A DNA stretch of 64,000 nucleotides from Pavona decussata (taxonomy: Eukaryota): positions 1,984,001 through 2,048,000 of the forward strand of contig CDRNST010000122.1 of assembly GCA_977016875.1 (NCBI GenBank), read 5' to 3'. Shown in pieces: positions 1,824 through 63,678 of this stretch (position 1 is its first letter; every line of letters starts with the position of its first letter). The notes below the pieces were generated by a model. It saw nothing but the letters and a program-made list of their open reading frames with translations. It did no database searches and was not told the origin of the DNA. Both the position numbers and the translations under genes were made by a program.

Positions 1824-4070
1824 GGTGTCTTCTTTGTCGGAAACAATACACCGAACCTTGTCCTTCACACGGTTTACGCTTCGCCTCAAACAAAATCAGC
1901 GATTTTCAGCGGAGTAGAGCTCTCAGTTCTCTTCCGCTGGAAGTGTGTCTATGCGTGTCGAGTATCCCTGGTGCTGGGTTAGGAGTTTGCACGAAGGAGC
2001 ATATCCCAGCAGGCACTTGGATCGGACCATTTGAAGGCAAACGAGTTCAGCTTGATGACGTCAAACCAGGCACGGACACGTCATACATGTGGGAGGTATG
2101 CAGTGATTGGTTCTATGCACAGTATGAGTTTTACCAACAGTGATCAACAGTTGTTTTCTCCTTACAATATAAAGACACTGCCAAACACAGTGGAACCCCG
2201 ATATCACGAACCCCTATGTGTAACGAAATCCCCGGTAAAACGAACGATATTTTTCGGCCTAGTTATAGTACAATGTATGTAATAGAATCGTGATATAACA
2301 CGCCCGTTGTAACGAACAAATTTTTATATCGGGGCTCCACTGTAGAACGAGGTGGTAGGAATACAGAAATCATCAACTAACCGAGCTTCATATGACACCG
2401 CATGTATTCTTGGCCCTAAGTTGATCGCCAGTTGTCCCATCCCTGAATCTCCTATCCTAAACATGGTATTACGTTATCACAAAGAGGTCTAGCTTGTAAT
2501 CACCAAGGTGGATGGAAAACGGTTGGGTAGTAAAGGAGCTTGAATAGCACAAAGCAATAGTTAATCTCCACTGAGATCTCAATATTCGCCGGTGTTTGGG
2601 ATGGAACATTTAGTCACGAAAACACCAACCTAGACTAACCCAGTAAATTTTGCCCTTTGCAGATTTTTGAAGACAACAAGTTGAGTCATTTTCTTGATGG
2701 TAAGGACGAGGGTCATTCAAGTTGGATGCGCTTTATACAATGCGCACGTTCTAAAGATGAACAGAATCTTTTCGCGTTTCAGTACAAGGACAATGTTTAC
2801 TACCGCTCATTCAGGGATATCGCTGTTGGTGAAGAATTTCTTGTGTGGTACGATGACAGATATCTACAACACTTTGGTATCCCTACAGGGCTGCACGACA
2901 TGTGCTTCGTTACACATGATGCTGAAGGTAGGTTAATTTCCGTTTGGTTTAATGAGGACACTAATCCACATGATAAAGGACCAGTCCACACTGACCATAT
3001 CTGGATAAGAAAAGACGCGTTTTCAGATTTCTCTGCATAAGTGTGGACGGGGGCTACGACTGCGAGAATAATTTGTTTTCTTGTACTTCCATTTTCCAAG
3101 GATTTTGACGAATTTGTCTCGGTTAGAATACTCCATTAAAATTTCGTTTTCAAATTTTCCTTGTCGCTTTTAAGATTTCTCTGCGACAACCTCATGATTT
3201 CTAGATTCTCTACAGTCGATACTCGATCCTGATTTCTCAGTTTTCGATTCTCTATCTTCGCAAGTATCGAGTATCGAGAATCGAAAGAGACAGTAAAGTA
3301 TTAGTTGACATTCTAAAGTATAATTTGTTGGTACTCTATCTGGTGAAAGGTGACGGGTTACATTGAAACCACGCTGGATTAAAATAATTAAGCGCAATTT
3401 ATCTTACCTTTCTTTCTTCTCCTTTGCTTGTTCATTACCAGGAAGTAAACCAAAGCAAACACCAAAGCCTGCCGAACAAAAACTTCCTCAATCACCGCAA
3501 CAAGAACAAGAACAACAACAACAGCAGCAACCACTTTTACAATTCCCTTTGCAGAGCACAGTTGCTTCACTTTCCAGAAGATTATCAACTGACAGCAATC
3601 TTACAGACCAGCGGTCCTCACCTGTCAGTGACTTAGAAAGTGACGTCAGTGATCCTGGAAGTAACGAAATTTCCATTGCCAAGAGTCCTGTGGGCGAACT
3701 GACGTCATGGCAGTGTCAGCAGTGTTACAAAACTTTTACTCAGCGGGTTGCTTTACAAATGCACGTGTGTCCATGCCAACCAGCCAAACCTTATCAATGT
3801 GGACAATGCAGCCTGGCCTTCTCCAATCCCTCGCTTCTGCGTGCGCATGTGATCTCGCATTCCAGCGAGAAGCCATTTAAATGCGGTTTCTGTTCGCGCG
3901 CTTTTGCGGGTGCGACTACGTTGAACAATCACATTCGATCACACATGGGACAAAAACCTTTTGGGTGCGACAAATGCGGCAAAACGTTCTCCCAGCCGGG
4001 ACTGCTGGCCAGGCACGCGAGGAATCCGCGCGAGTGTAAAGGTGCTCCACTCTCGCCCTTTAAAGCTTGA
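1824..4070 (+). CDS. PRDM6: PRDM6-like PR/SET zinc-finger protein, paralog 1 (5'-partial). Exons 1824-2095, 2663-2927, 3442-4070
   Basis: Knuckle CLLC..CPSH; PR motifs [35 protein letters not shown]; fingers [38 protein letters not shown] (PRDM6 signature). AG/GT boundaries keep frame (phases 1,0,1). No upstream pre-SET exon found in the window. Confidence 0.9.
2188..2342. mobile_element. Short Tc1/mariner (pogo/Tigger-like) MITE in an intron of paralog 1
   Basis: CAGTGGAACCCCGATAT ... ATATCGGGGCTCCACTG inverted ends; TA on the right, CA on the left. Confidence 0.65.
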
Positions 4071-4208
4071 GTCAATTGCAATTTGTTTATTAGGTTGATA
4101 TTTGAATTCTCTCTAATTTGGAGGTCAAAACATTTTTTTAATTAAATCTATTGGAAGACCAGAATTTTGTATGGAAACAGTGTTAGATTGTATAACGTGA
4201 CCCTAGGA

Positions 4209-5757: not shown

Positions 5758-8700
5758 ATGGCACATGAGACCCAGGTAAGTGTTGTTAGTGTAGATTGGG
5801 TGTGTAAGCTGTGAGTAAGCTTTTGGGGGCGATGAATGCCACAAGGAATTTAAGTAAAGAATTGAAGTAAAGATTACGCTATTTAGTAAGGGTCTTGGGA
5901 TATTTTAAACCCAAGGAATGTTTGGTCTTTATTGCAGTTTGTAAAGACCGCAAAACTCCGCCAGATTTTCTTTGGTTTCTTCACCCTGCAGTCGCTAGGC
6001 TAGTTACGCCTCGATGAGTTGAGTTTCCTGCGCAGATTGCCGCAAACGCCAGCTTTCCAACAAAATGAAGCGCATTTGCGACATGACTCGATCGTAGGAA
6101 ACGGCTAAAATATGAAAATGGATTTCGTCTGTGTATTTGTTGTTTAAAGGTTTTGGAAAGGCACTAAAAGTTGGTTTGCGCAGCTAATTATGCAAGAAAA
6201 CAGAACTTCTAAAGGGGAAAAACAATAGAGCAAAGAAATGCCTTGGTTATTCGACGTTTTAGACGTTTTTCACCAAAAACTTACGTTTCCTCTTTTTTTT
6301 GAACGTACTAGACCTGTTTCAATGTTGCAGTAATGTTTTCAAACAGGAAGGAAATGAAATTTTCAAAAAAGTCTTCAAAAGTTTGAACAATGCCTATTTA
6401 CTTTTAATATTCAGAAAAGAACGATCTGCTCCATTGAGTTTGGTAATTTAAGCAATGGGACGTTTGTGAATATTTTGTTCATGGTTGGGCTCACGGATAC
6501 GTTTAATTCGTGCATCACTGGAGCTGGCAGTGAATTCAAAACAGACAAACGTCTTTGGAGAATGTTCTTACAAGCATAACTTCTCGATACTTCCTTCCTG
6601 TCGAATCATTTTGACTTGAATTTGTTTACGGGGCGTGAGCTAAGTGTTTTGATTGCGGTGTAAATTCGGCTGAAAATTGTTTTCCTTTTGAATTGCGTTT
6701 GTTTGCCATGTTATTTATTGATCGATATACACTTAGCTTGTCCCCGACTCTCGTACGCTTCAGGATAAACGTACGACAGCGCGCCAAACAAAGAAAATGA
6801 ACAAACAATTAAACAAAGCTAGAGTATTTTCCTGCGTGTTCGCGCGTTGCTCGAGTCCGGCCGAGTCAGCTAGAACAACTCTTTGAATTTTCGCTTTACT
6901 GCTGAAAACAGCACGCATTTATGATTTTATTGTATTTTTTTGCTAGGAACCAAAAGTTAGTAATCCTTTCCTGGAGAACCTGCGCAAATACACCGGGCTT
7001 TATGAGCCTGTGGTCAAGCGAGCAAAGCTCTCGTCATCATTATCACCAACACAAGTCGCTCCAGTGCAGACCCCAAAGAAGCACACATTCACTGTAGATG
7101 ATATACAGAAATGCCTTTTTAACACGTCAAGCATACAGCCAGTTAATACTCAGGAGCTGATCACCAAAGGTCAAGGAATTGCTTGTTTCTGTAAGTATAT
7201 AAACTATATAGATTTTAAATTATGTTGTTCTTGTACATGCATAATTGATCAACAGATTCTCTTCCTTTCGTGCGCTCCGCTTTGGTAATTCAGTAATTCG
7301 GCCTGCTTCGATGGGTATTGAAAAATCACGCAAAAGCGTTTGAAAAAACCAACTTTTTCACTGCCATCAAATGTTTTTTCATGGCAATCTAAATATTGGT
7401 TTAATACTAAAAACAGTTGATGTTGATCACAATTACTAAAACGGCATTAAAGTAACTAACCGGCCCCCGCGCTTGCGTGTTTCTTTAGCACTTTGCTTAC
7501 AACAGAATATTCAGAATTAATTGTTTAGTAGTCAAGCAGAATTCAAGTTTAATCGTCTTAATATTGTATTGATTTTCCAGGGTGTGACGCAAGCTCAACA
7601 AATCCAAGCTTTCAGTGTCCCCACCACAGAAATGAATCACCTACATCTCAACAAAACTCACAGCTACCACTGGCTGTAAGATCACTTCCGCCGGAAGTTG
7701 GGTTATGTACGTCAAGCATTCCCGGGGCAGGGTATGGTATTTGTGCCAAGCGAAAGATTCCTGTTGGTGCATGGATTGGTCCGTACGAAGGAAAATTTGT
7801 GAAGCCTGAAGAGCTGTCTTCATCCACGGATACATCCTACATGTGGGAGGTAGGTTTTCGTCACAAAATAAATTGATACGTTCAGATCCAACATCACACA
7901 TTCATTTCTCGGGCATGACCAGTTCTCCTCTTACTAGACTCTAGGCAATTCTCTCTTTCCCCCGTACATTGCCGAGCCAGAAGCGAAACACAAGCCACGT
8001 CTGAACACGAAAAATAGCCTCTTGCAAGCCCGTATTCTTTAACCACCGTTCACTCAATCAACTTTGTTCGTGCTTGCTTGCATCCTCAGATCTTCAAGGA
8101 CGGTAAATTGGCGGGCTTTGTGGACGGGAGTGACGAAAGAGTGTCAAGCTGGATGCGTTTCATCCGCTGCGCCAGACACAAAAATGAACAGAACCTGTTT
8201 GCCTTCCAGTACTTGGGAAAAGTGTACTACCGCTCATTCAAAGCAGTCCTGCCTGGAGAAGAAATGCTGGTCTGGTACGATGACAAATATCCCCAATACC
8301 ATGGTATTCCCAGAATCATCTTTGATATGGGTGCAGTTACGACACAAGGTAAGGGTCCCCAAAAGCGATCCAGGGCACCTTGTATTTCTGTGTGATAAAA
8401 ATTATGAGTAACTGCATGGTCCCAGAAAGTAATGATGGTTACTTTTTTTTCCATAGGAGGTCAGCCAGAAAAATCAGGGACTGTTCAGTCTGAAGCGAAG
8501 GAGTATGCATCATTTGAGACCGTAATGGCGCCAAATCATTTTCCACCCACACCTCCCAGCTCAGTCCCTTCACCCTCCAGTCCGCCTTCACCTAACAGCC
8601 AGCAAAACTCTCCCAAAGCATTCAGTGGCGAACCAGTCAGCGGCCTGCAGAGTGAAGTAACTTCCGCCTTCGACTTTTCGGTAGCCACTATGAGCCGTAA

Positions 8701-9196
8701 AAGGCCGCACTTTCCCCCGTCGCCGGCACCGGTGTCTTCACCAGAGAGCATTAGGAGCGACACTGCTTCACCCAACCGCAGTGAAGATGGAAATAGTAGC
8801 CCAACAATAGCAAAACAGCAAGTTTATTCCAATATCACGGAGCTGAGCCTATGGAAATGCGGTCAGTGTAAGAAGTCCTTCCCCCAGCGGACCATGCTCC
8901 AAGTTCACATCTGTAACCAGGCTCCAAAGAAACCATATCAGTGCGGCCACTGTACGCAAAGCTTCTCTCAGCCAGCAGAGCTGCGCGCGCATGCTGTCAT
9001 TCATGCCAGTAAGAAGCCATTCAAGTGTGGCTACTGTTCCCGCGCTTTTGCCGGCGCCACCACTTTGAACAACCACATCAGAACACACACTGGCGAAAAA
9101 CCGTTCGTGTGCGACAAATGCGGCAAGCATTTTACACAGGGTTCCCAACTTAGCAGGCACCAGAGAATTCCGGGAGACTGTGTGGCATTAGAGTGA
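5758..9196 (+). CDS. PRDM6: PRDM6-like protein, paralog 2 (~509 aa, closest to canonical PRDM6). Exons 5758-5775, 6947-7190, 7581-7849, 8090-8348, 8457-9196
   Basis: ATG exon MAHETQ|gtaagt; pre-[14 protein letters not shown]; knuckle CFWC..CPHH spanning a splice junction; complete PR domain; fingers [54 protein letters not shown] closely match vertebrate PRDM6 as I recall it. Exon lengths sum to 1530 nt (in frame). Confidence 0.92.
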
Positions 9197-13175: not shown

Positions 13176-16100
13176 TCATGGAACACAGTCTCCCGGTATT
13201 CCCCCGTGTTTGTGTAGCTGAGAGGCCTGAGTAAAAGTCTTTCCACATCTTTCACACAAAAATGGCTTTTCGCCAGTGTGCGTGCGCACATGATTGTGCA
13301 GAGTTGTCGCTCCAGAGAATGATCGAGAGCAATAGCCGCACTTGAATGGTTTCTCACCAGCGTGAATGACAGCGTGCATGCGCAGTTCGTTCGGATGATC
13401 AAAGGACTGAGTGCACTGGCCACAGTGATAGGGCTTGTGAGGCCTGTTTGGACACACATGAATCTGCAATACTGATCGCTGAGCGAATGATTTTCCGCAC
13501 TGTCCACAGCTAAAAAAGCTGGCATCAGAACCATCTGAACTGTTTTCGTCATCATCAGCTGTGGACTGGCTTTCTTCTGCCACTGAAGGCGAAACCTTGG
13601 AGTCATCACCATGGTTACCAAGGGAGCCTGGGGTGTCCTGATGACCATTGGCTTTCGTGCGTCGCGCGACAACGTTCGTTGCTCCAAGAGACACAGCTTG
13701 ATTTTTCTGTTCCAAACTCGCATCTGCTGAAGAAAACCCTTTTGTAATTGGCGCACTGCATAGCGCGCCTGTGTCAGCACATGCCCGTGCAACGTGACGA
13801 GCGGTATCGTAGCCTTCTGCTGTTAGAGATGCACGGGAACCTCCACTTCTTGAGGAAATAGTTGGGCTTCTGCGACGTTTGACACGTGTTGGACCATGTG
13901 ACTCATCACGCAATGGATCACGTGATGGATCACGTGATGGCAATGAAGGCCTTATGGACGGTGATTGTTGATTGTCGGTCAGGGCCATGGGGCGATACCC
14001 ATAGGGGGACAATTGTGGATTTTCTCGTGAAACTACACCCAACATCTCCGAATGTTGTCTTGAATCTGAATAAAATATTAACACCTTGTAGTTAACACGA
14101 AGAACTGAGGTTTAAATCAGCAGATTAGACGTTATTTTGGACATTGTATCCATTAAATACCGAGAATAGGAACAAACGACAGAATAATAAAAAAATTCCG
14201 AACCTAGCTACGTTTAGCGCACAGTTTCAAGGTAACGTGCATCTGCCGGTTGTTAGTATACACCAAACCAGAGCATAGTGGTTTTCACGCGCTCTGATTT
14301 GCTATTATATTCAAACTTCAGGTAGTATTTCCAATTCACCTCCCGCCATTGTCCCGATTTGCGCGCGAGTTTTTCCGCCAGTTTGTTAGCAATAAACTGA
14401 CTCATTGTGCCTGACTATACACTTGTTTGGTATATACTAAAACATTTTTCCACATCAGTGACCCTGAATTAGTGTTAAATATCGGGTTTGGATTTCAGAA
14501 AACCTGTAGGTATATACTCCGAGCTGAAAACCTAATTATTTCTCTGGTATACTCAATGTGACTTTTGCGTCTATGCATGAAATTCTAAAGTGTGTCATTG
14601 AAATTAACGGTACGGATTAGTATTTTCCAGTGAAATTGTTTGTTTTCAATATTCAATCAAACGCTAATTTGTGTTAGTTTTCGAATAAAATAATCTTTTG
14701 TCTGCTTAGAATACACGAATTACTGGAGTTTGAAACGGTTTCCCCTACCCACCAAACCCCCCCCCCCCCCCCCTCTCTCTCTCTCCGCGCCATAAGTCAC
14801 TTCTTACCGACAGGAGATCCAGGGGAGGTTTCACGTATTTCAAGTGGGATACCCATGTATTGAGGGTATTTTTCGTCATACCACACCAGCAGCTCTGTTC
14901 CGGGGGGGATGTCTCTAAATGCTCGGTAGTAAATATTGCCGTAGTACTGGAACGCAAACATGTTCTGCTCGCCACCGTGTCTTGCACAGCGGATATATCG
15001 CATCCAGCTTGACTTGTTTTCATCTCGTCCATCGATATAATAAAGAAGCTTTCCTTCATGGTATATCTGAAAAACGAATGATCTTCTGGCTGAATTAAAC
15101 TTGCTAAGTTAGAAGTATGCGTATACTTGTAAATTATCGGCGTGCTACCACGCGCACATGTTGCGAACCTGTAGTTTGTTTACGTCATTTCGCCATGTGC
15201 TCGGTCACGTGACTGTGGACAGTCTCGCTGGAGAAACGCCATTTTGGAACGCCGGTTGATCGTACGTTGTGAATTGCGTTGGATCTGTAATTGCCTGTAA
15301 TAGCCTTTACATTGGATCGAAACAGTGGGTAAGTTCGGTCATTTATGTATTTGCGCTTCTCATTTGCTGGATCGCTATTTCCAGAAATTCTGACTTAACC
15401 TGAGCTGACTTATAATTAACTTGACCTTTTGATCCGCGTGATCATGACCTGGAGAGTTTGTCTTTGATTATTTAATGGAATGAAATAGAGCTTTCCAGTT
15501 TATGGTCTGAGTTTTCGACTCCAAACTTGGAATTATTGTTCTTTACGTAGCCTGCGATCTACGGATAAATAATGATTATTGAAGTTTATTTGTAGCCACT
15601 TTCAACGTTTATGCATCAGTCAATTCCAACAGTGCCCTCCCCCCCACCCCCCCTGGGCCGACCCGCGGGAATTACATTTTGTTAAAGAAATAAACTGGCA
15701 AATAGCCCACGGCTGGGACAAACTAGTTGGTCAAATGTCCCGGGAAAGTGGCTCAAAATGTTTTATTTTTTTTTGTCTCTTGTCTTACTTTCAATAAAAT
15801 CTAAGCTAATTCAGACCAAATTTAGTCCTAGCAAGGTCTTGTTTCCCGCAGTATTGAAAAAAAAAATAGGTTTTTCTGCAGCTCTAGTGTCTCATTTATG
15901 TCCATATTATATTATATTTATGTCACATATTCAAGAAGAAACTTGCCATATTTGCTGATGAATTGGTCATTAAAAGAAGCGACAATGCTGTATGGTGAAA
16001 ATAGCGAGATGGTCAAATGCCCCGGGATGGACAGTGTGGGAATGCCCCACTATTGCCTGGGAGGGGGATTTAAATGGTAGGATGGGCACAGCTGGTATTG

Positions 16101-19100
16101 ACTGATACATTAATACATACACAGCGGACCATCTTTCGACATACCATGTAAGCAGGCCTAAGTCTTAAATGAAAGCACAACTTAAGTTTAGGTTAAGTTT
16201 AATAATACTTTGTTAGAGGGACTTACATGACTAGATAATAATTGAGGGAAACTGAATTCCCTCACTAAGGTTACTCTCTAATTACAGCATTGGCATTGAA
16301 CTCGACTTTGGACTTTTTTTTATTGTCAGACTGATGTGGGGGAATATCAAGAAATCAACCTTAGAGTGATAAATCAACAGTTTGAAATTTAACACCTTGC
16401 AAACAAAACGGCCGAATTCTATAGGAAGTTTAACATCGAACAGAGCCAATCAAAAGCGGGCAAATATTTTGAATTTTCCTGAACCGAGCAGTGCAAAGTT
16501 AACAGGTTAACACTTATCAGCCATATTACGTCAGTAGTTGTTGTTAATTTGTCATTCCTTTTGCCAATAAGTGGAAAATGTTCTGGCTTTATAGTTAAAA
16601 TGGTCTTTCAGCTGTTTATCTAGCATGTCGATGTCAAAAGATGGTATGATGAAAGATAGTCACTATTCTCTGCTGCACATGTAACACTGAAAGTGGCTAT
16701 AAACATATGTAGCAGTTAAGTTTGGAAACAGCTAGTTTATCGTTAAACATAACCCATCTCTAGAGATACAACGGTTGCTAATTGCTCAAAATTGAGTTGG
16801 AATAAAATATACCTCCCACATGTAAGGTGCATCTGTTCCAAGACAAACTTGGTCGGCTCTCACTATTTCGCCTTCATAAGGTCCAATCCAGGTTCCCATG
16901 GGAATACGCTGTTTCGCGCACACCCCATAACCTGCTGCAGGGAGACCAGACTTGCACAGGCCGACTTCATTTGGAAAAGACTCCACTGCGTAAGGCCATT
17001 GTAAGTTGTTGTTATTTGTTTTGTTGTTGTTGTTGTTAACTGGTGTTGATATTTTGAGGGTTTGGTGAGGACCGTGTATTTGGCATATTTCTGGTTTCTC
17101 TTGATAACATCCTTTACACCCTGGGGGAGAGGGAAGAAATGAATAGTCATGATATGCCACAAATTCCACGTGTCTCACAGATCACTACATTAGCCATTTG
17201 CATAAAATTGTAACAAACGACACATCAACTAAGAAACTTTTGAATGCAGGGGGCCAGACGACGCACAACTAAACTGTTCTGAATATGTTTCGTTGCCAGA
17301 TCTCTTGTAGTACAAATGCCTGTGCCAGACGTCACTTTACGTGTAAATAAGATTTGTCCCTGAAAAAGACTAGCAGTACTAGCTGAAATATTGGCCCAAA
17401 TAAATTGCCTTTTGCCGTAGTGTCAGCCCTGCAATCACTTTGGTTAACAGCAACTAAGGGGGATATTTAGAGATATCTTAAAATATATATATTTGTCACG
17501 AGCAAAATTACCCCTTGGGTGTGGTTGTTTAAAAGCCTTTTCAAAGTGTTACCGACTCGGACCTAACAACCTACTTATCTTAAGATTCTGAATGTACTTT
17601 TTGAACGTCGTCTGCCAAGGATTGTACTTTTTCAAGTGAATCTCGGTGGTAATGGAGGAAAGAACTGTTAAAGGAGAATAATCCAGAACTAGCGTATAAT
17701 ACATATGTTGAACTAGAAGAACAGTTATTCTGACAGCGGTGCGATGCGCGTTATTGGGGCGCGTTATTCTGGAGCCTGAAAAGAGCGACTGTAAACCAGT
17801 TGAATTAAATTTTTTCCTCATGACTGTAACGATTCAACAAGGGCGACTTTTATGAAGTCTTACACATTAACAAAGACTACTACCAGTTTTTTTTTTTCAA
17901 AGACGGTGGCGCGGACGATGCGAGAATCTGAAATTGCGTCGATCTTCGAGCGGTAAGCACTGAACTGAAGCGAGAGCCGCAAGTATAATGAGGGCGGCTT
18001 GCGTCCTTTCACTCGCCCTCCTTGAAAGACGTAGATCTCGCTCGCAGTCTAACAGCAACAAACATCGAATCTTCTTCATGTTTCCGACTTGTATACATAT
18101 TTATTAAATTATTTATGGTTATATTTATTTAAACTCCTACTATAGGGCGAACTATTTTAGGAGCACATCATTAAAGCATTAAATCAAAGCTGGGCCTCCA
18201 AGGATGCCTCTCGTTGAAGCATACAGGTTGATCCGAACAATAAAGACTTTAGTTTTGTCTCAGAGCTAGCGGAGAAACAGGCCGTGAGTCTAGACAGCCA
18301 TCCTCAAACCCTCAGGTAGCATTGTCTTGGCCAAGTTCTACTCAAGTTGAGTATATTTTACTTGAGGCTTTTTTTCGTTATAACGTCTCGCTCTTTTGAC
18401 ATTCGTTTCATTTCGCTGCTCTAAATTTCGTTTTGTTTCATTGCTATAATTGCATATTCCTTGTGAACTGCGTCTACTCGTTTTTAAGAAGCGTGTCAAA
18501 AATAAATAAATGCATGACAGGGTGGCTTTGAATCAATATGGTGTAGCAGTTAAGGGTGTTCAGATTTAATGTTTTATTACCTTCTTTACGCTTGAGCACT
18601 TCAATATGTCGCGCAGTTCAGTTGTATTTTCTGAATTCTTTTATGGATCGTGTATGATAATCATTTACACAGGTGTACCGAGCATGCAAACCATTTGATG
18701 GAGCTCAAAATTTGCAAAAATAACCCAACTTTACTGACAGTGTCGTTGTAAAAAGTGAGTACAGATGCGAATCAAATTTGCACTCTTTTCGCGGACTTTT
18801 AAGCTATTCATCTCCCAAGGTGGGTGTTTTTCTTGTTGTTTGTGCGGTTATTGTGCGGATTTACGGCGACTTTTGCCGGGGCTTGAATGACATTGGAAAC
18901 GAGTACTGAAAATGTGGAGTATGTAGAAAGCCTGAGNNNNNNNNNNNNNNNNNNNNNNNNNNNNNNNNNNNNNNNNNNNNNNNNNNNNNNNNNNNNNNNN
19001 NNNNNNNNNNNNNNNNNNNNNNNNNNNNNNNNNNNNNNNNNNNNNNNNNNNNNNNNNNNNNNNNAAAGTCTTCGCTGCATCAGAAGGCAAGTTGGACAGA

Positions 19101-21716
19101 GTCCTGCAGTCAACCAAGTGTGCAATGCAAGATATTGGTCTTGAATGTAACCCGAAAAAGTACTCAGTGATTCACTTGAAAAGAGGTATTCAAATGTGCA
19201 ACGAGCCAGGCGTGAAGATGGGTGACCAAATGACCATTACAGCCTTTCACGATGACACAGTACAAATTTTTGGGTGTGCAAGAGAACCTTTTAGAAGACG
19301 AAAAGCTTGCCTTGGCAGGTGCGGCGAAGGAGGATCTTCGCAGAGTTTTAATCATGTGGCCTCAAACCCACTTTCGGACTTTAATCTCGTGGTGGCGACA
19401 AACCAGTACGTCTTGCCTGTCTTGAGTTATTTGATGTTGACGCGGCACTGGCCATTTGTGAGAGTTGAAAAATGTTGACAGAGAACCCCGCAAAATAAAC
19501 CTAGAGAACGGAGGTAAACACCCTTCTATTCTTACCTCCTTGCTGTATCTCCCTAGGGATAAAGGAGAAGGAGACTGCGCTCTGTGGAACACGAGTACAA
19601 ACTTACAAAGATCAAGGCGGCGCTCATGTTATACCAAAACGCAGACCAGACGATGCTGGTAGTAAGAGAATTCAAAGGAACGCGCGGAGATTTTAGGTCA
19701 CAATTCACGGCTACGTGGAGGAACTAGATATTGCATAATAACTTGAACACCCAATCCGAAAGTGCTTCACTGCTAACGGAGACGAAATTTCAACAAAGAA
19801 TTGGAGTAAAATTGAAGAAAGCCAAAGAATTGCAGTTCTGGGAGACCGCCAAAAGTAAGAAATGGCAAGGAAAGTTATTCTGTACGAGATGGCAAGATAA
19901 AAGCTTGAAGGTGACAAGCTGCTTTGCATGGTTTAAGAGTGGAATGCCTGTCCATCATACACTATAGCAGACATGTATGAGTTGTGTGAGCAACTACTGC
20001 CCGCAAAGCTGTACACTAGTGAGAAAACTAAGACCTGCACGGAAGGTTAAGCAATGTGTAGACTGTGAGGTAAGGCCCCCCGAAAGCCGTCTCCCACATC
20101 CTGGCGGGTTGTGCTGCCCTGGTATAAACCAAATACCTCATTGTCCAGGAATAACAATGCATTAAAGATCTTGTGTTATAAACTCTGTAGTTTTACATGA
20201 AACACCGGTTGGTTGACCAAGTTCCACCTTGGCACTCGCCAGTGATGACAAATCCACGTAATCAGCCTGATGATTGTGAGGCATTTTGGGATGTTCCCAT
20301 AGAAGCAGAGCACCATGCAGTTAGAGCTAATAGGATTGACACAAGAATTGTGAGTCACAGGGATAAGAAAGTAACCATGCCAGAAATGACCTGCCCAGAA
20401 AAATCAAAGAAAAAGCAGAAAAATCAAGAGAAGCTGATGAAATATGACGTGGGGAACTGAAACAGTGCTATCAAGAATACACTGTGGAACAATACAATAT
20501 CGTTATTGACGTGTTGGGGGGGGGGGGGGTGGTCGAAGGACCTCGAGTGCTCGATGCTGAAGAGGCTAGGAAGAAGAGGGAAGAAATTGTTAGCGAATAT
20601 GCCGAAGGCTGTCATCTCCAACAGCCTGAACATTGCCCGAACTTTTAAAATAGTCGTTTTGGTGCTTAGGCTTGATAGCCTTGCTATTAGTTATAGTGTT
20701 TCCTCAAATATTTTCAGTGTAAGTTTTTATTACTGGACTTTCACATTTGTGATCTAAATGTTTAAAAAACAATGGACTCGATTTCTGCTATACCAAATTA
20801 TACAACACAGGTTTCTTTTTAATTTTTATAGGCAAAGACAGGATTTTCTTCATTTTCTTTTTATTTAACTGTTTTATTTGTTTCAAATAGATCTAAAGCT
20901 TATCTCAGTCAGCGAACCGGTGAAATTATGTTGGTGTCAGAAATTTAATGAATAACAAACAAATTTCCCAGTGAGATCTGAACGATTACAACATCGAGTG
21001 TTATTTCTGAGCAACTCTTTGTGAGACTGAGTATTATGCTTAAACAGACTGAAAGAAAACAAGTCAGGATTTGCCGATAAATTAATACATATACAGTGAT
21101 ATTGCAAATGATAGTTGCATTTTGATAATCCTTGCACTTTTCTTGCTAGACTCTACTGCTTTGATCAACATTACAGTTCGGTCAATTCATTTTTTGTTCA
21201 GTGTTGCCATAATTAAAGCCGGTTTTTTTGCACCCAACGTCATATCCTGGCTCTTACACAAGTCACACCATGATGAAGGGACATCAAGGAAATAAATTAT
21301 ATTCCGCGATACATTGCATTGCATAACATACGAATGATAGCTATAACAAATTAAACTTTATAAGGACTGTTTTGGTTGGCAAATCAAATGGTACTCATAA
21401 ACCGACATCAAAGGATACGGCTTTTAACAAGGTTTTGACGCAGCAACATTTTGCGGCAAAGTTAGGTAAAATATTAACAATTTAGGAACTTACAGTAGCT
21501 GTTGACTTCCTCTCCGCGTTGAAGAGATGTTTTTAACTCATCTTTGTTTACAAGTCTTACTTCATTTCTTCTGTACAAGCATCGTTGAAGATCGTTTGGT
21601 GTAAAGAGGACTGGCTGCGCTGTGTGCGGCGTCGGGTACGATCTTTCTTGCGTAACGTTTGAATCTTTGCGGCCTGTATACGCGGTTTTTACTCTTGGAA
21701 ATCCAGCGTTACTCAT
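13176..21716 (-). CDS. PRDM6: PRDM6-like protein, paralog 3 (~559 aa). Exons 21716-21494, 17120-16813, 15066-14808, 14065-13176
   Basis: Pre-SET FTPNDLQRCLY; knuckle WCKGC..CQIH; [29 protein letters not shown]; four fingers incl. CGYCSRSFSGATTLHNH. Exon sum 1680 nt. The first exon join crosses the N-gap and a retroelement, so it is less certain. Confidence 0.85.
15612..16109. mobile_element. Non-autonomous DNA transposon in an intron of paralog 3
   Basis: TGCATCAGTCAATTCCAACAGTGCCC ... GGGCACAGCTGGTATTGACTGATACA imperfect TIRs; TTA on both flanks. Confidence 0.7.
18937..19064. other. Assembly gap (128 N)
   Basis: Run of n characters. Confidence 1.
19065..20700 (+). mobile_element. Decayed non-LTR retrotransposon with restriction-like endonuclease (R4/NeSL-type), 3' part, antisense within a paralog 3 intron
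   Basis: Frameshifted motifs in the expected order: DIGLECNPKK, YKFLGV, NQYVLPVLSYLM, LLYLPRDKG, KKWQGKLF, CCHC knuckle CRL*GKAP..HILAGC, RLE WDVPI..RANRID..EMTCP, terminal SLNIARTFK. Confidence 0.85.
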
Positions 21717-41468: not shown

Positions 41469-44400
41469 TCAGGCGTAACAGTCATAAAGCGACCTCTTAT
41501 GCTTGCTGAGTTGAGATGCTTGGGAAAATGTCTTGTAGCACTTGTTACAGGAGAAGGGCCGCTCTCCAGTGTGCGTGCGCACGTGATTATTCAGAGTCGT
41601 CGCTCCAGCAAATGTGCGCGAGCAATATCCGCACTTGAATGGCTTTTTCCCTGAGTGAATGACAGCATGCGTGCGCAGCTCATTAGGATGAGCGAATTCC
41701 TGGGCGCAGTGACCACACTGGTAAGGCCTGTTTGTATTTCTTGGGCAGCTGTGCACTTGAAGGAGGCTTCGCTGCGCAAAAGATTTGTTACATTGACCAC
41801 AGTGCCATATTTTGGGTTCGCCGTTCTCCAAGATGAATTCACCGTCTGCAACTCGAGGCCATTCGCAAGGCAGTTCTGTCTTGTCCTTAAGGCGTGCCTC
41901 TTCTAACTTTTGTAGCATTTCTTTAGAACCGTCTTTCTTCTGGGTTATTTGCTGTGTTTTGAGCTTCTTGGAGTTGCGGTCGTTTTCTTCATGTTTCCGT
42001 TTGACAGCATCCTTTTGCATCTGTTTGCTTGTGTTTTCCCTTTCTGTTGCGCCGGGTGATTTTCGAGCTCTGGTTTGTGGAGAGAGTGGTGTGTGATAAG
42101 GTGACTTTCTCTGGCTTGGTGCTTGCGCATGCAAAGATGCCGGTGTTACAGCGACGGAAATTGGAGCGGAAACTGAGGCGACCTTCTGTCCATCTGTGTA
42201 CGAAGTTGCTGCAGGTGGATAAGGCCTTGGTCCTAAAGAAATGAAGTAATATGCATTGAATGTTTTGGTTCACCACAAGAATAACAGAAAATGAAATGTC
42301 TACAGTTGTGGAGAATGTTTTCAGATATAAGGAATAATAAACACCGGGGGAACTATGTGTAATGTATTCTAAAAAATTGTTGACGTAAAAGAAATGTCCA
42401 AAGAAGCGATACGATCATAGGCAGGACACACCATTAACAGCAGTAGAAGAAATCGCTGCTGTTTCAAATGATGCTGAGTCTCACTGCCATTCACTGAATC
42501 AAAAGAATGGAACCACAATAATGGTGTCACTATGAGAGCGCAGGAGGAAAGAGAGCATCAAGTTAGACTCACCCGTCGAGTTCAAGTCGTGGATGCTTAA
42601 AGGGATCCCAAAGTATTGCGGGTACACATCTTCGTACCACACCAGAAGCTCTGTGCCCACGGGGATGTCCTTGAAAGCTCGGTAATAGATGTTACCACAG
42701 TACTGGAACGCAAACAGGTTTTGCTCGTTTATGTGACGTGCGCACTTTATGAATCGCATCCAGCTGGAAGATTCCTCGTCTGTGGCATCGAGATAGTACA
42801 ACAGTCTTCCTTCTTTGTAGATCTAACATAAAACAGGGTCGACATTAATATTAAATAGATAAGGGGTTAGTTTCTAAAGAAACTGTGGTGCGACCTTTTT
42901 GTCGTTTTCATATGACTTAATGTTTGACAGAATTATTTGTGTTTTAGTAAGATTTTAGGGTAGGGGACACTTTGTGATGTCTATCATACAGTTCATGCAT
43001 CTCATTAGCGTACATTTCTGGACATATCTCGCTGCGTTGGTGGGGGAGTGAAAGCGAATGTTTGGTTTTATCAACAGAGTTAGTAAGGTCATTTCGCCAC
43101 CATAAGGACGTTCGAGAGATGACGTCTTCGTCGACTGAACGGTTAACTCTCGAAGGATCAGCTGTCAATCTCTCTAGAGTGGCGAAATGACTTTATCAAC
43201 TTAGTTGATAAAGCCAAATATTCGGTACCATTGATATTAGATTATTCAAAGTTGAATCAATCCTCAATAGCAGTAGATAAAGAGTCTTGTCCTTTTCTCT
43301 CTTTAGTTTCGCTTTCGCATCCTTAGAGCACCCAACTCAGTAAGCTTGGGCGAATTTGGCGAAATGTATTCTTGGAGAGAATAGAGAAATAAACAAAAAG
43401 GAAAGGAATGTACGACAATTTTCATATGAGCGGATACACTAAAACCTTTTCAAATGTAAACCGCAACTGATCATTTTGCCCAGAAATTAATAGTTAATAC
43501 TAGTTATTATCATGCACACAATAACTTATCATAGAAGCTAAAGGAAAGTACTGCTCGGTAGCTTTCATTTGAATGGTCACTCTTTATGATTTCATCCACA
43601 GACTAAAAAGTTAGAACCACCTTGTACAGCATAATAAACAGCACCACAGGAAAGTACTGCTCAGTGGCTTTCATTTAAATGGTCACACTTTAGGGTTTCA
43701 TGCACAGAGTCAAATGTTAGAATCACCTTGTACAGCATAATAAACAGCACCACAGGAAAGGAATGCTCAGTAGCTTTTATTTGAAATGTTACACTTAAGC
43801 ATTTCTGCCATGTTTTAATGCATCAAGGTATACTTCACGAGAAAAGGGAACATAGATATCGTTCCTGTCTCACCTCCCACAAGTAAGAAGAGTCCATGTT
43901 TGGGTTGATAGCATCAGGGGCTATCCGTCTTCCCTCGTAAGGTCCGATCCATGTTCCGACAGGGATGTGTTGCCTAGCAGCCACACCATACTTCTTCCCT
44001 GGAATGCTGGACTTGCATAGCTGGACAACATCCGGGAATGACTTGATGGCATAGCTGTTCCAATCCACCTGACTGTCAGATTCAGCCGTCGTGTTGTAGG
44101 TCGAGTGGATTGGGCAGCAGATCGCATATAGCTTGTTACAGCTTCTGCAAACTAAATAACGACAAAAATTGAAATGAAATGCAAGTCACTGTCGCGTGAT
44201 GTTTGTATCATATCCTATTTCAATTTGAGGAAGAATTTCCAAAGCTTGACCACCCAGAGAAACACCTTTTTGCGTGGTACTGTGGGTGAAATCCTAAAGT
44301 GTGACCGTTAAAGTGAAAGCTACTGAGCAGTAGGTGTTACTTTTTGTGGTGCTGTTTTTTTTTTATATTGTTTGAGTCTTTGTATATGTAATCGCATTAA

Positions 44401-46287
44401 GCCGAGTCGCTGCCGCCACGAGGGCAATTCGCGAAAATTTTGAAAATACAAGTGAAAATTAATCCTTAATTCTACAAGGACTCATAGCGATTACGTGTTT
44501 ATAACATAGAGGGGAAAATTTTCTTAAAACTATCGACGGAGGCACTTCGTAAAACAGTCAGTCCCGGCTTTGAGTAAAAACACTCACCCGTAAGCAAAAC
44601 AAACAAACAATTCGCTTGTTTCTTAGCGTACAAAACAGACAAAACGAGAAAAGTTGACTGTCATATGTATGTAATTAAAAAACTAACAACAATTAAAATC
44701 AAACGTTAGGCCTCAATTAATTGATTCACCTGCCCTGTGGACCTTTCTACCGCTTGAAAATTACACGAACACAGATCGATAAAAATAATAAACAATGGGT
44801 CCAAAAAAATGAAATTGCAGAGTAATTTCTTCCATTAAATTTGATCTGCTCCATCCCCCCATCAAAAGGGCACTGTTATTAAGTTCGGTTATCGTTCGTT
44901 GGAAGAAGCCGTAGCGAGGTGAAAGCACTTGGTCGCGGCCATGAATGATTTCAGTTTTTCTCTACCAAACAAATCCGATCAAGTTTTTAGCTTTTGACAC
45001 AAATTATCTCTTGCTGTTTCTTGAAAGAAACGAAAGTTCACCTTTAGGAATTTCCTGTAGCAATTGATTTCCAGGTATTTGTGGCACAAACACTCCGGCT
45101 TAAAAAGTCAAAATCTAAAGAACCTGAAAGAAGTCTTGTTGTTGCGGCACAAAATAAAGAAACCAACTAAATGTAGAGATGGCGCGCTCAGCCAATCAGG
45201 AGCAAGCATCTTCGCCCCTCGACGAATCAGGAGTGAGTAGTTTTGCCCTCGGTGAAAGGAAAATTAAGAAAAAAATGCCCTCTGTTTTGACCAATCAGCT
45301 TTCAGTAATTTTGCCTTCTGTGTTACAAGGATTGGAAATGTTAAGGCGCCTTAACACGCCAAACAAAAGTTGACAACTGGAGTTGGCACGTGTGAACTTT
45401 GCAACAACGGCTGGCAAACAGGTTGGCAAACTGTTGGTAACACTAATAGAACTTGTCTCTATTCTGGCCAACTTATCCAACTTTTTCACCATTTTTTTCT
45501 GTTAGCAAACGCATATTTCACGTGTCAAAAGAAAGACTGTCAAACGGGACTTGTTCACTTTTAACCAATCAAAATGTCGCGCTATCTGAAGCTGCGCCAA
45601 GATGCTCGCATGAGGCGCCATGTTGGCATTTTTTGCTTTATTATTAGAGTTTTTCAACTTTTGTTTACCTTGTGAAAGCACCTTTAAAGTGTGACCATTC
45701 ACATGAAAGCTCTCGAGTGTCACTTTACTGAAGGAAGTATTGTCTGATAGCGGCTTGATCAAAGTCCACTTACATCGTGTGTGACCCCCATTCAGTCACC
45801 CTCTGTTTCTTTCAGGATTGTTAAAAGCCGCGGAATGGAGTTTAAATTTCAATGAAAATAAAATACTTCCAAGTGAAAGCAAATCAGAAGCCTTTTGTAA
45901 GTGATCAATTTTTTTTCATGTCTGTGAAATAGAATTTGTTGGGTGTTTCAATTTTGAAACGATGGATATATGAAAATGATGAATGCAAACAAACACTAGC
46001 AACCAACCAACCATCCTTTAAACAAATAAACAGTATAAAATCTCTAACTTACAAGAAGGGCGCATTTCCCTGTCCGTTCCGTTCTCTGTCATTTTCTTGG
46101 GTCTTGAGTCTTCAAGGTTAATCACTTCAACATTTCCACTTTTCTGGTGTAGACAGTTGTACAAATCCTCCGCCGTGAACGTATAATATCTTGATGATTT
46201 CATCGCGGCTTCTCTTTGTGGTTGTGCTTTTACAAAGCTGTTCAACTGGGGCCTCAAAGGCGGCTTTGCAATTGTGGAAGCCTGCAT
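41469..46287 (-). CDS. PRDM6: PRDM6-like protein, paralog 6 (~508 aa). Exons 46287-46053, 44151-43874, 42822-42573, 42232-41469
   Basis: [11 protein letters not shown]; knuckle FCRSC..CPIH; [27 protein letters not shown]; four fingers with GATTLNNH. Exon sum 1527 nt. Start codon is the first in-frame ATG (inferred). Confidence 0.88.
43066..43224. repeat. Palindromic Penelope-derived element (degenerate)
   Basis: GAATGTTTGGTTTTATCAAC..AAGGTCATTTCGCCAC mirrored by GTGGCGAAATGACTTT..GTTGATAAAGCCAAATATTC; related to the element at 59133-59240. Penelope assignment is from family resemblance. Confidence 0.55.
43543..43800 (-). repeat. 106-bp satellite, about 2.5 copies, inverted relative to the 50-51 kb array
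   Basis: Reverse complement of TTCAAATGAAAGCTACTGAGCAGTACTTTCCTGTGGTGCTGTTTATTATGCTGTACAAGGTG; single fragments also near 14575, 44290 and 45685. Confidence 0.85.
44501..45327. mobile_element. Probable non-autonomous DNA element in a paralog 6 intron
   Basis: ATAACATAGAGGGGAAAATT ... AATTTTGCCTTCTGTGTTAC imperfect inverted ends; no clear target duplication. Confidence 0.45.
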
Positions 46288-58186: not shown

Positions 58187-58546
58187 CAGTCAACCCAGGT
58201 CACGCGTGAACAGTATTTCCAAGAATGAAATGAACATTCGAATTTCTCTTTGTAATGTCCGACGTGTGAATGGAATGTTGGACATTTCTCTGGAAATCGT
58301 TCCGAAAAAGACGCATTAACTGAAAAAAAAAAAGATTCAAAATACTTGAGAAACAATTGTTATTCTTGAAATATTCAATTTTGCAATGTAAAGAAAAATT
58401 CTTAGCTTTATACCGTCAATGATTGAGCTAGGGAAATTTATACGGGAACTCTGAAATCTCGTTGGCGATTTTCAAAACTGACATGTAAATTTCAAAACTC
58501 CGCTCAAATTTCAAAAATATCGTTCACGCGTGACTTGGGTTGACTG
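58187..58546. mobile_element. Tc1/mariner-type MITE
   Basis: TA-CAGTCAACCCAGGTCACGCGTGAAC ... GTTCACGCGTGACTTGGGTTGACTG-TA. Confidence 0.8.
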
Positions 58547-59858: not shown

Positions 59859-62800
59859 TTAGTCTGTATGTTGCGCGCAAATCCTGCGGTGGCGGCTGAG
59901 CTGGAAAGCTTGGGAGAATGACTTGCCGCACCCGTCACACAGAAATGGCTTCTCACCGGTGTGCGTGCGCACATGATTGTTCAAAGTAGTGGCTCCTGAG
60001 AATGCCCGCAAGCAGTACCCGCACTTGAATGGCTTCTCGCTAACGTGGACCACTGCGTGCATGCGCAGTTCTTTCGATTGCGCAAAAGCCTCTTGGCAAT
60101 GGCCACATCTATATGGTTTACAGGGCATGCGCGAACACAGATGGTTGTTTAGTAGAGACCGCTGAGTAAAAGTTGTTTTGCATTGGCCACATTTGAACTC
60201 ACCACCCTCCCCAGCGTTGTCCAGCACATCGTCAATCGCCCTCCGGTGGTGTGTCCCCCCATGTTCACTTGTACTGGGCTTTTTGTTGTGATCCACGCCT
60301 GCGCGAGATAGTTGCACTGCTGTCTCGTTGTAATCCAGTGAGTTGTTGTTGCTAATTTCTTGCTCCAGTCGAAATCTCTTGTTGTGTCGTTGTGATTCAA
60401 GAGTTGAGGGTTCCTCAGATGTTTCTTGATGCAGCAAACTGAACAAGGTTTGTGTTGACGATTTTCTTTTCGGTCCTCGGCTCAGCTTAGACGAGTCTTG
60501 GCTGGACCCATTCTCAGCATTCTCAGGGATTTCATGTTCCTCTGATGATATGCTGTCACGCGACAAACGAGCTGCAATGGGATGTTTCTCACTTGATCTT
60601 TTTTCTATAAGAAAATACAATTAGTTAACGATTAGGTTTTGTACGCCATATAATGCCCTTGCCCTCTCCACTTTCGTTCTATCGTACTTTTATTTTGACA
60701 AGGTAAAACATACGTTAGATCCAAGCCGGGTATTAACAGCGCCCCACTGTAGCTGAAACTGCGTTTTAAAAAAGCGAGATGTAGGGCTCAGACATTTCGG
60801 TAAAAGTATGGTATGTGAGAGGGTGAGGGGCTGAACCTCCGAACCAAGCTTCCACGCATGAAACTATTTTGAGTACCTTGTCCCCCTGGGGTGCCTTAAA
60901 ACGAAGATGTCTTGAAAAGGTACCCTCTAGTCTACATGAAGTATTTTTTAGGCCAAATATCTGGTTTTGAAACTAATCCTTTTAAAATTTAATCCTTTAC
61001 GATGACTTGGAGGTCAGCGCAGAGGAGATATGAATCATGCGAAAATCAAGTCATGTTGTCCCGCCCAACATTTTAAGCTCCTATATGGAAACACGCTGTG
61101 ATTGGCCAATCTTGGAGAACTGAAAGAAGTGCCCTGTTTAGCGGACGTTCGACGGAAATGAAGCGTAGAAAAAAGTACCCGTAGGATATCACAATTTTTT
61201 TCCATGCGAAAACAAATTACACGGATAGAAAGTGAAATAAAAAAAGCTGGGGATGCACTACAGCCAGTTATCGTGGCCCCCTCTTGATCTTATGTAAAAC
61301 ATTTGCAGCAAATTAACATAATACCAGGTAAGTGAAGAAAAGAACTCTTGTTCCCAATCCCCACTGGTATGCCTATATGTTGCGTGTAACTGTCCTCATA
61401 CCAAACCAAAAGCTCACATCCACGTGGAATGTCACGGAATGCTCGATAGAATATATTCTTGTTATGCTGGAATGCAAACAGGTTTTGCTCTTGCTTGTGA
61501 CGCGCGCAACGTATGAACCGCATCCAGCTTGAAGTGTGTTTATCACTCCCGTCTAAGAAGTAGTCCAGTTGGTTGTCATCATAAATCTACAGAAAATAAC
61601 AGAACTCTAATGTTAATCACCTGTAATATTTGTAATTGCATTTGTATTTTTTATTTACTCCACATGATCATATTACAAAAGGTTGCAGTACGTAGGAAAG
61701 GAGTGGAGAAGGGCATAATATAGTTAGCTAAATGTATGCCCTTTAAAATTACGTTACAATATTTGTCAAGATAGAAAAAAAAAGAAAAGAAAAAGGAAAA
61801 CTAATTATAAATAGAGCAGAAGAAAGACAGAAAACGTTTTACAAGGTCGTGTGGCAGTGATTAATACTGAGCAAAATAATACTGGAAGAGAGCTCGTTTA
61901 AATGTTGTTTTGTTGATTTTTGACGAGTAGATATAGGAATATCATTCCTGTAATAGCATTCAATAATTGTTGGGCAAAATTTCCTAACATTTATTCTGAA
62001 AGGACAAGGATTCAGATGTTGCAGGGAAGCAATTCAAGTGGCATAATTATGTTGCTTAGTTACTAGGGTTGGGGTGAAATTGGAAGGCTTTCAATCTACA
62101 ATAGTAACCGGCCTTAATGGAGTACCTTTCAGGAATAGCCATAGGGGAATTTACGATTTACCACTTAACTATGTTAATAAAAAAAAAATGAATAAATATT
62201 GTGAATAAGTTCACTTTCCTTGAGAGACAACGGTATTTAGCAAGGAGTACATAAATAGACTATCCATATATAAGTTGGAATTTCGAGATGTTGGTTTTCG
62301 ACGCAATGGACAAGCGGGAGGACCCTGGGAAAAATCACCTTTGAAACTAATAACAAACTCAACCCACCTCTGGCGCCGGGTTTTAATTAGGACGCAGTGG
62401 TGAGAAAGGAAGCAGCGTATGGTTTTCTCGAGCATCCAGCATTTTGTCAGGTTTCTCCAACCAATATCAATATCGGTATATGTAGGGCTAAATGGAACAT
62501 GCGCAGCTGCTGCCAGATAACGCCAACAAACCATGAAGCTTAGAATTAATGTAATGTACCCCTTGCTGGCATCTTACCTCCCACATGTGCGACGTATTCA
62601 TATCAGCCGTGACGTCATCAATGGTAACACGCTTCCCTTCATATGGACCAATCCACGTCCCTACAGGAATATGTTGCTTGGCGCAGACTCCGAAATTTGT
62701 CCCAGGGATGCTGGAGAGACACAGTGTCACCTCATCCGGGAATGAGGCTACAGCGTAACTGAGCTTTACATTTGCTTGCACGGATTGCCTGTTATCTGTT

Positions 62801-63678
62801 TCTATAACTGTTTCGTCTTCATCTGGCGTTACCGCTGGAAACTCTGGTTCCCGTTCATTAGCTAGATTGTAAATAAATAGATTAATCTTTAGAATCTTAA
62901 ATCCTCGAAATCAGGTTATTTTGCCTTTATTTTGAAGGTTACTAGCGAGTCAAGGGTTACTAAGGCCTACAGGAACTTGTTGAATTAAACGAATGCATCG
63001 CTTCGTTCCTCATTACTGTGGCTTGCCTTCTCTCCCCCCCCCCCCCCCCCCCCCGCAAAAAAAAAGGAAAATATAACTTCTAGCACCCTGGGTATTCACA
63101 GATAAAAATATTAGCTTATTTAACATTTTCGAGACAAAAGGCGGAAAAATATTATCCTTTTACTAAGTCACCGAGCACGAACCCAACGCATTCGCAAGAG
63201 CACACGGTCACGGTCAACAAAGATATCCCGGTCGTCCTTGTTCCCGCTGACCAGTAGATGAGGGTGGAGGGTGTAAGAACGAATGCGACACGTGATAATG
63301 TCAAGCATGCGCACAAGGGGTTAAAATTTTATATCGTGCTCAGTTTCCTTCGCGTTCCAATGAATGAGGGTGACGTGGGTTTGGAGAAGGGGGGGGGGGG
63401 GGGGGGGAAGAGGAAAAGCGAAAAGTGATGGTTTTTCTTCCCGAAGTTTAAGGAAGAATACTTGGGTAAATAGAGTAAATATTATTACAGAAACATGTTA
63501 CGAAAACTGTTACTATACCTGAACCTTTAATGTTCACTATCTTGACTGGGTTTGAGCCAAACAGAACATACTGCAAAACTTGGGAAGTAATTTGTTCCCG
63601 TTGAGATGAAGGTGATTTCTTGACCACCGTTGGCGAAGGATTTTGTGCCTCTAAGTACTGCTGTGTCGTGTCTTCCAT
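59859..63678 (-). CDS. PRDM6: PRDM6-like protein, paralog 7 (~483 aa), lacking the zinc knuckle. Exons 63678-63519, 62861-62578, 61586-61325, 60604-59859
   Basis: [12 protein letters not shown] pre-SET variant; PR motifs [27 protein letters not shown]; fingers incl. [17 protein letters not shown]. Exon sum 1452 nt. ATG directly follows a possible acceptor (cattag), so a further 5' exon may lie outside the window. Confidence 0.87.

Follow-up and report, generated by a model that had tools for sequence, protein, structure and literature searches.

The DNA analysed here is a stretch of 64,000 nucleotides (positions 1984001-2048000 of contig CDRNST010000122.1, C122) from the 602-Mb assembly of the coral Pavona decussata; it is called the window throughout, and coordinates count from its first nucleotide unless another contig is named. 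A six-frame tblastn search with three exon types identified seven loci in the window, g1 to g7, each composed of an exon for the N-terminal half of a PR/SET domain (A), an exon for its C-terminal half (B) and a C2H2 zinc-finger exon (Z); g1 and g2 lie on the + strand and the other five (g3-g7) on the - strand. We consider it very likely that these genes belong to an ancient tandem array of the PRDM6 family in a scleractinian coral, and we propose that their products may act as DNA-bound chromatin regulators. Among Pfam families, PF21549 (PRDM2_PR/SET) matched both PR exons in 7/7 genes (27-103 bits over the two halves), and PF00856 and PF00096 were matched as well; C2H2 fingers are present in every Z exon, with a single weak finger in g4. 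Homology searches were carried out exon by exon, and exons were joined locally for frame checks and for trees. Judging from the copies taken together, the full type comprises a short N-terminal FTxxDLxxCLY motif, a zinc knuckle, the PR/SET domain, an unconserved linker and four C-terminal C2H2 fingers, and is interrupted by three shared introns.

On the + strand, g1 (1799..4070) consists of exon A with the knuckle and the N-terminal half of the PR domain (from 1824, or from an ATG at 1799, to 2095), exon B (2663-2927) and a finger exon with four C2H2 fingers (3442-4070). The model from the ATG at 1799 is open over 396 amino acids (aa), its knuckle gives a weak match to PF18445, and the ortholog in a close relative (~80% nucleotide identity) is 86-93% identical; upstream of g1, no N-terminal exon (N exon) was revealed by motif and tblastn scans that covered 12-40 kb. 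The second gene, g2 (6953..9196), has an N exon (6953-7190, with the motif FTxxDIxxCLF), exon A (7581-7849), exon B (8090-8348) and a finger exon (8457-9196), which together encode at least 501 aa with no internal stop. Since its N exon contains no in-frame ATG, and an in-frame TAG with a T-rich tract just upstream (6945-6953) resembles a 3' splice site, g2 likely has a further 5' exon. Orthologs of g2 begin with M-(D/E)-(L/V)-E; a pattern scan for first exons of g2 and g4 with an ortholog-like start, M-D/E-x-E, found nothing.

On the - strand, g3 (13176..21716) comprises an N exon (21716-21494), exon A (17120-16813), exon B (15066-14808) and a finger exon (14065-13176), and its 559-aa model is open. 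The N exon and exon A of g3 are separated by a long intron that contains an assembly gap (see below), and we regard them as parts of one gene, because the 529-aa ortholog P0018, located on short Logan contigs, reads from the N motif straight into the knuckle, and because the two exons are colinear in the close relative. In g4 (24906..27869) the N exon starts with an ATG at 27746 (homology extends to 27869) and ends at 27632; it is followed by exon A (26996-26728), exon B (26132-25874) and a last exon (25489-24906) in which one C2H2 finger is left, and the 408-aa model is open. The fifth gene, g5 (31788..38708), has two 5' exons (38708-38658 and 38268-38079), exon A (34679-34414), exon B (34164-33888), an extra linker exon with approximate borders (about 32843-32688) and a finger exon (32371-31788); for this gene the check covered the exon pieces, all of which are open, rather than a full joined model, and its ortholog P0145 is 81% identical. 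The two remaining genes, g6 (41469..46287; N exon 46287-46053, A 44151-43874, B 42822-42573, finger exon 42232-41469) and g7 (59859..63678; N exon 63678-63519, A 62861-62578 with no zinc knuckle, B 61586-61325, finger exon 60604-59859), yield open models of 508 aa and 483 aa, respectively. A 5' exon with the FTxxDLxxCL(Y/F) motif was thus located for g2, g3, g4, g6 and g7, and in g5 this part takes the form of two exons. An earlier note on this DNA had proposed seven frame-intact PRDM genes in the window; the exon pieces are indeed open in all seven, and the six full models are free of internal stops. The outer limits given there also agree with our models, position 1824 being the phase-1 acceptor of the g1 knuckle exon and 63678 the ATG of g7.

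The same note had claimed that the copies share intron positions and phases (1, 0, 1), and inspection of the splice sites bears this out. All introns of the six local full models (g1, g2, g3, g4, g6 and g7) are of the GT..AG type. N exons end one base into a codon before the GT donor (phase 1), and in g1-g6 the strong acceptor of exon A lies two bases ahead of the first knuckle cysteine (phase 1). Exon A closes exactly after (Y/H)(M/L)WE at a GT, and exon B opens after an AG (phase 0); exon B in turn ends 9-18 codons plus one base past the GIP motif, with GTAAG-like donors (phase 1). The intron after MWE occurs also in PRDM9- and PRDM14-like loci of this genome, and hence it is not diagnostic for PRDM6.

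The cluster had been suspected to continue past both edges of the window. To the right this is the case, as three further copies bring the number on the contig to ten: g8 (74102-78806 on the scale of the window, +) and g10 (132839-139599, +) with the same exon sets, and g9 (81198-84780, loci L006/L007, -), which encodes a PR domain only, with neither knuckle nor fingers. To the left, 40 kb contained no further array copy. Nine of the ten copies thus follow one another unbroken over ~85 kb, and the tenth lies ~48 kb beyond. The last exon of g9 ends in a motif, RRAIVI..DAPDPF.(I/V)L, that is common to its ~320-aa orthologs in other corals.

The assignment to PRDM6 draws on a maximum-likelihood (ML) tree of the PR and finger columns (85 rows, 290 columns, PRDM8 and PRDM13 references left out). 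In this tree the ten array genes and vertebrate PRDM6 form one clade (support 99/97), within which all ten fall in an anthozoan clade (84/83), and the PRDM9-, PRDM12- and PRDM14-like loci of P. decussata fall outside. A search with the N-terminus and PR domain of P0018 retrieved, in its first tier, anthozoan proteins named "putative histone-lysine N-methyltransferase PRDM6" by NCBI, and scored vertebrate PRDM6 at 165-171 bits, compared with at most 140 bits for PRDM9-like proteins. In the array, identity to vertebrate PRDM6 is 41-47% for the PR domains, and the finger blocks share 56-69% identity with bat PRDM6. Four C-terminal C2H2 fingers are colinear with those of vertebrate PRDM6 in g1, g2, g3, g5, g6, g7, g8 and g10, but not in g4 (one finger) or g9 (none). 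A CxxC...CxxH knuckle opens exon A in g1-g6 and g10, and is missing in g7, g8, g9 and in their orthologs. The coral FTxxDLxxCLY motif, which was not found in g1, aligns on the pre-knuckle motif F..SxEELDYYLYG of vertebrate PRDM6 (hhalign E 2.3e-4, probability 44%). We therefore assign the array copies to the PRDM6 family, with no scatter among PRDM subfamilies, in agreement with the PRDM6-like identity put forward in the earlier note.

Sixteen other PR loci of the genome were fetched for comparison, and at least 25 PR loci were counted in total, which exceeds the 2-19 Prdm genes per species of a 2016 survey (Vervoort et al. 2016). The best matches to solved structures identified L021 (contig C58) as PRDM12-like (97 bits), L022 as PRDM14-like (92 bits) and L025 as PRDM9-like; L022, L024 and L028, all PRDM14-like, lie on C120, C25 and C8. 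Loci L017, L019 and L020, on C28 (twice) and C84, combine knuckles with long repetitive finger arrays and are PRDM9-like. Genome-wide, the four-finger block of the PRDM6 type was found only in the array and once elsewhere, on contig C64. This dispersed eleventh member of the family (L026, C64:1313000-1322999) is represented by orthologs in Porites and Actinia; a distance of 1.6 kb separates its first finger from fingers 2-4, and there is one TAG within the genome match. A divergent locus on C273 (L018, C273:1222000-1231999) also falls inside the PRDM6 clade of the ML tree; its knuckle is strikingly similar to that of vertebrate PRDM6, and its fingers are degenerate (three, 51% identity).

Which of these coral genes corresponds to vertebrate PRDM6 is a question on which two readings compete. 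In the ML tree the group of the C64 locus, which includes a sea-anemone member (100/99), is sister to vertebrate PRDM6 (86/68). It is also the C64 locus that reaches the highest identities to vertebrate PRDM6, in the PR domain (56%) as well as in the fingers (73%). Since every array member is more distant from vertebrate PRDM6 than this locus, we interpret the array as a set of anthozoan PRDM6-family paralogs, and the C64 locus, rather than the array, as the more likely direct ortholog. Alternatively, the array members could jointly be the true co-orthologs of vertebrate PRDM6, with the C64 and C273 loci as further paralogs and the grouping of C64 with vertebrates a consequence of slower evolution. 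The support for the node that joins C64 and vertebrate PRDM6 is only 86/68, a tree of the PR domain alone placed the C273 locus with the vertebrates instead (82), and in summed similarity to bat PRDM6, g2 and g3 are level with the C64 locus. Against this stand the identity values, in which C64 exceeds every array member, and the well-supported sea-anemone member of its group; we consider joint co-orthology possible but unlikely.

The claim that the duplications are old and that the copies have been retained is well supported by comparison with other corals. Nine of the ten copies (g2-g10) have one-to-one orthogroups there, with support from 90/89 (g4) to 100/100 (g6 and g7 as orthogroups, and g9 within the PRDM6 clade). 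Acropora, Porites, Oculina, Pocillopora and Desmophyllum contribute members to them (the g6 orthogroup includes Porites, Oculina and Pocillopora), and proteins from other corals are much more similar to one array member each than to the rest. The tenth copy, g1, has its ortholog in the close relative. Among the copies themselves, g2 and g4 are sister groups (100/100) with 80% identity in the PR domain, the identity between the others being 49-62%; self-blastn aligned the window paralogs in their exons only, with similarity stopping at the exon borders. Segments of the gene order are also kept in other corals: with g5, g4 and g3 on one strand and then g2 on the opposite one, Porites evermanni has exactly the arrangement of the window, the close relative has the order g1+, g2+, g3-, g4-, and in Pocillopora verrucosa the orthologs of g8 and g7 lie next to each other in divergent orientation, with a third PR and finger gene, possibly the g6 ortholog, coming after them. 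Taken together, these comparisons indicate that the duplications predate the crown-scleractinian split. Sea-anemone sequences join the g3 and C64 groups in the ML tree, and some of the duplications probably predate the split from sea anemones.

Selection was estimated for g1-g4 by the Nei-Gojobori method against the close relative, at synonymous divergences (dS) of 0.17-0.39. The ratio of nonsynonymous to synonymous divergence (dN/dS) is 0.04-0.18 in the PR and finger exons of g1-g3, except for 0.58 in g1 exon A, where dS is low, and 0.23-0.40 in the linkers; by gene it ranges over 0.08-0.58 in g1, 0.04-0.28 in g2 and 0.11-0.40 in g3. In g4 the PR exons give 0.22-0.27 and the linker 0.80, and in the close relative in-frame stops occur in the g4 linker, ahead of the remaining finger. 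A ratio near 1, which had been named beforehand as a finding that would speak against retained copies, is not what the domain exons display, most of them lying at 0.04-0.27, and the pattern indicates purifying selection that maintains the copies.

Transcription and splicing are established for g1 and g2 at least. Assembled contigs from runs X9 and X10 join exons A and B of g1 (the loose end being ...SYMWE) and have intron 2928-3441 spliced, and contigs from X10 and X1 have the g2 introns 7850-8089 and 8349-8456 spliced out, so that four junctions across the two genes are confirmed with exactly the predicted introns. X1 and X9 bear the label of the same species and X10 that of a related one; the label of these runs as RNA is a guess, and we counted the contigs as RNA because spliced contigs are not expected from DNA. 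One X1 contig runs on into g4 sequence. Contigs from a metatranscriptome run (X2) were unspliced and DNA-like and were not counted as expression. For g2-g6 and g8-g10, orthologs occur as full-length spliced coding sequences on Logan/JGI contigs of 1.3-3 kb, which are presumably transcripts.

These data make it very improbable that the array consists of decaying or neutral duplicates with no maintained function. Several features do resemble decay: the finger array of g4 is eroded, with an elevated ratio in its linker and stops in the close relative, the g2 N exon has no ATG, no N exon was found for g1, and the ratio in g1 exon A is 0.58. However, every modelled exon is open and has canonical splice sites, the domain exons are mostly constrained at a dS of 0.17-0.39, the orthogroups have lasted through the divergence of coral families, RNA contigs show g1 and g2 in spliced form, and the loss of fingers in g4 and of the knuckle in g7 is shared with orthologs.

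It has also been considered that the copies might be truncated paralogs of PRDM9 of the SZ type (SET and zinc finger) rather than relatives of PRDM6. Ancient SZ-type PRDM9 paralogs, some of them on one scaffold, have been described in corals (10.64898/2026.09.07.749791), a knuckle in front of the PR domain and three conserved tyrosines are features of PRDM9 too, and exon B as query gives much the same score with each of the solved structures of PRDM14, PRDM9 and PRDM12 (for g5, 71 bits with PRDM14, level with PRDM9). The tree nevertheless sets the array apart from the PRDM9 clade (99/95), in which PRDM9-like proteins of vertebrates, echinoderms, molluscs and cnidarians are united with L017, L019 and L020 and which leaves out all array genes. 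In addition, vertebrate PRDM6 outscores PRDM9-like proteins (165-171 versus 100-140 bits), and the four-finger block is colinear with that of PRDM6 at 56-69% identity; an origin from PRDM9 is hardly credible.

The DNA between the copies agrees with the claim that no other recognisable gene lies among them in the window. Ten non-PRDM open reading frames (ORFs) of at least 90 aa were scanned in the window and gave no Pfam match, as did a repeat ORF at 19092-19478; a scan of this kind between the genes cannot exclude genes with small exons. Dispersed repeats occur in the spacers, and the 13-kb spacer between g6 and g7 contains two dispersed repeat families and is otherwise unique. At 58184-58551 there is a ~370-bp element with many copies in the genome at 95-96% identity, which looks like a young short interspersed repeat; another family, with many genomic copies at 79-86% identity, is found at 50428-51170, where it is partly tandem, and at 43538-43818 in a g6 intron. 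The g5 intron after exon B carries a low-complexity repeat (33300-33860) with SQSV repeats in open - strand frames, and the long g5 intron an inverted repeat pair (37320-37490 and 37583-37763, 92%). The first non-PRDM gene to the right lies in the interval between g9 and g10, together with reverse-transcriptase fragments: it is a single-exon receptor gene of the rhodopsin family (7tm_1, 95 bits; L008:200-1297, or 94200-95297 on the scale of the window, -).

The assembly gap in intron 1 of g3 (128 N at 18937-19064, between N exon 21716-21494 and exon A 17120-16813) has a left flank (18300-18936) that is unique in the genome and a right flank (19065-20800) formed by a dispersed repeat, of which the genome has ~20 copies that are 76-81% identical; the close relative has no alignable sequence across positions 18792-20858. 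The gap touches no exon, and no reading frame depends on it. That the cluster is an assembly artefact, made of haplotigs or of collapsed or duplicated repeats, has a negligible chance of being right, given that this single gap within the region lies at the edge of a repeat and inside an intron, that the copies differ widely in their PR domains and do not align outside exons, and that the same order recurs in three independent assemblies of other corals.

Several observations weigh against an ancient array of PRDM6-family regulators, and they concern its phylogeny, the gene models and the range of the comparison alike. The anthozoan clade that holds the array is only moderately supported (84/83), and g1, whose branch is long, joins the g5 group weakly (85/33). 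The 5' ends of g1 and g2 are unfixed, and either gene could be 5'-truncated. RNA support in this species concerns 2/7 of the window genes and comes from contigs whose RNA label is guessed. Gene order elsewhere was seen in windows of 25-37 kb only. One octocoral member of the family has no PR neighbour within 10 kb, and the array may for this reason be limited to Hexacorallia; a Munc13-like neighbour of that octocoral gene has no counterpart within 204 kb in the array region of P. decussata. Finally, DNA binding, methyltransferase activity and a repressor role are carried over from vertebrate PRDM6, and are for the array products predictions by analogy.

The copies had been described as modularly diversified, which is true of one part of the proteins and not of another. 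They differ in linkers and N-termini and by loss of domains, the knuckle being lost in g7-g9 and the fingers in g4 (one left) and g9. The g4 orthologs P0140, P0143 and P0151 have no fingers, and the knuckle is likewise missing from the g7 orthologs of Desmophyllum (P0147) and Pocillopora (P0156); as the losses in g4 and g7 are common to orthologs, we take them to be old, stable states. The DNA-contact residues of fingers 3 and 4, in contrast, are nearly invariant: the recognition residues (-1, 2, 3, 6) of finger 3 are GTTN in every finger-bearing copy and in vertebrate PRDM6, and those of finger 4 are Q-x-(Q/H/L)-(R/K), with fingers 1 and 2 variable. Three tyrosines are kept in all copies, except that the first is F in g1, as in vertebrate PRDM6; they align with the three tyrosines of the PRDM9 active site.

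Vertebrate PRDM6 is a repressor that recruits histone-modifying enzymes. By analogy, the array products would be sequence-specific nuclear regulators acting on related DNA motifs, the latter because the recognition residues of fingers 3 and 4 hardly vary, and their PR domain and linker might recruit or carry out chromatin modification. The paralogs would then be divided by expression and partners, not by DNA target, and the members that lost their fingers (g4 and g9) may work with no DNA binding of their own. A "PRDM6-like" gene of Nematostella is an early marker of stinging-cell specification and is listed among cnidocyte genes. We tentatively suggest, as a speculation that we rate as rather doubtful, that the array is held together by function, through shared or interleaved regulatory DNA and coordinated or mutually exclusive expression in related lineages (e.g. 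stinging-cell or neurosecretory), with the finger-less g4 and g9 as modulators of the DNA-binding members. If true, this would make the array a deeply conserved, cnidarian-specific regulator cluster with a logic like that of other conserved developmental gene clusters.

Corals possess about ten linked, old paralogs of the PRDM6 family and two dispersed members, most of them with their own ortholog across coral families, and the two main coral clades have stretches of the order in common. This provides a defined and testable set of candidate cell-type regulators, including natural variants that have lost the knuckle or the fingers, and a case for asking why some regulator arrays remain linked over very long times. 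That Prdm genes have multiplied in cnidarians is known in general terms (Vervoort et al. 2016; PMC10415408; 10.64898/2026.09.07.749791), and we found no published description of a conserved PRDM6-family array in the literature searched. The array is a lineage-specific expansion of a known family and not a new kind of system, and its genes are ordinary PRDM6-family members that are already annotated automatically as PRDM6 in other corals.

Vertebrate PRDM6 (PRISM) shares with the array the order of parts (knuckle, PR domain, linker and four C2H2 fingers, perhaps preceded by a corresponding N-terminal motif), the clade, fingers that are 56-69% identical and identical recognition residues in finger 3. 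It differs in being single-copy, in having F in the GP(Y/F) motif, where most array copies have Y, and in retaining the knuckle absent from g7-g9 and the fingers lost in g4 and g9; PRDM6 is single in vertebrates and was reported lost in protostomes (Vervoort et al. 2016). The full-length and SZ-type paralogs of cnidarian PRDM9 are similar in that PR/SET and finger genes were multiplied, partly in tandem and in some cases before the split of anemones and corals (bioRxiv 10.64898/2026.09.07.749791). The PRDM9-type loci of this genome, however, have long repetitive fingers and belong to another clade, whereas the array has a fixed block of four fingers with conserved contact residues. Prdm14a-d of Nematostella provide another case of several retained cnidarian paralogs, and these have their expression in neural cells (Vervoort et al. 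2016; PMC10415408). The Oculina ortholog of g9 is named "PRDM14-like" by NCBI, yet g9 lies inside the PRDM6 clade (100/100) and the PRDM14-like loci L022, L024 and L028 lie outside it. Vertebrate clusters of KRAB zinc-finger genes resemble the array as tandem sets of zinc-finger regulators derived from local duplication. Turnover in those clusters is rapid, and their DNA-contact residues change, whereas the coral copies are of old origin, can be paired one-to-one with orthologs across coral families and have kept their contact residues.

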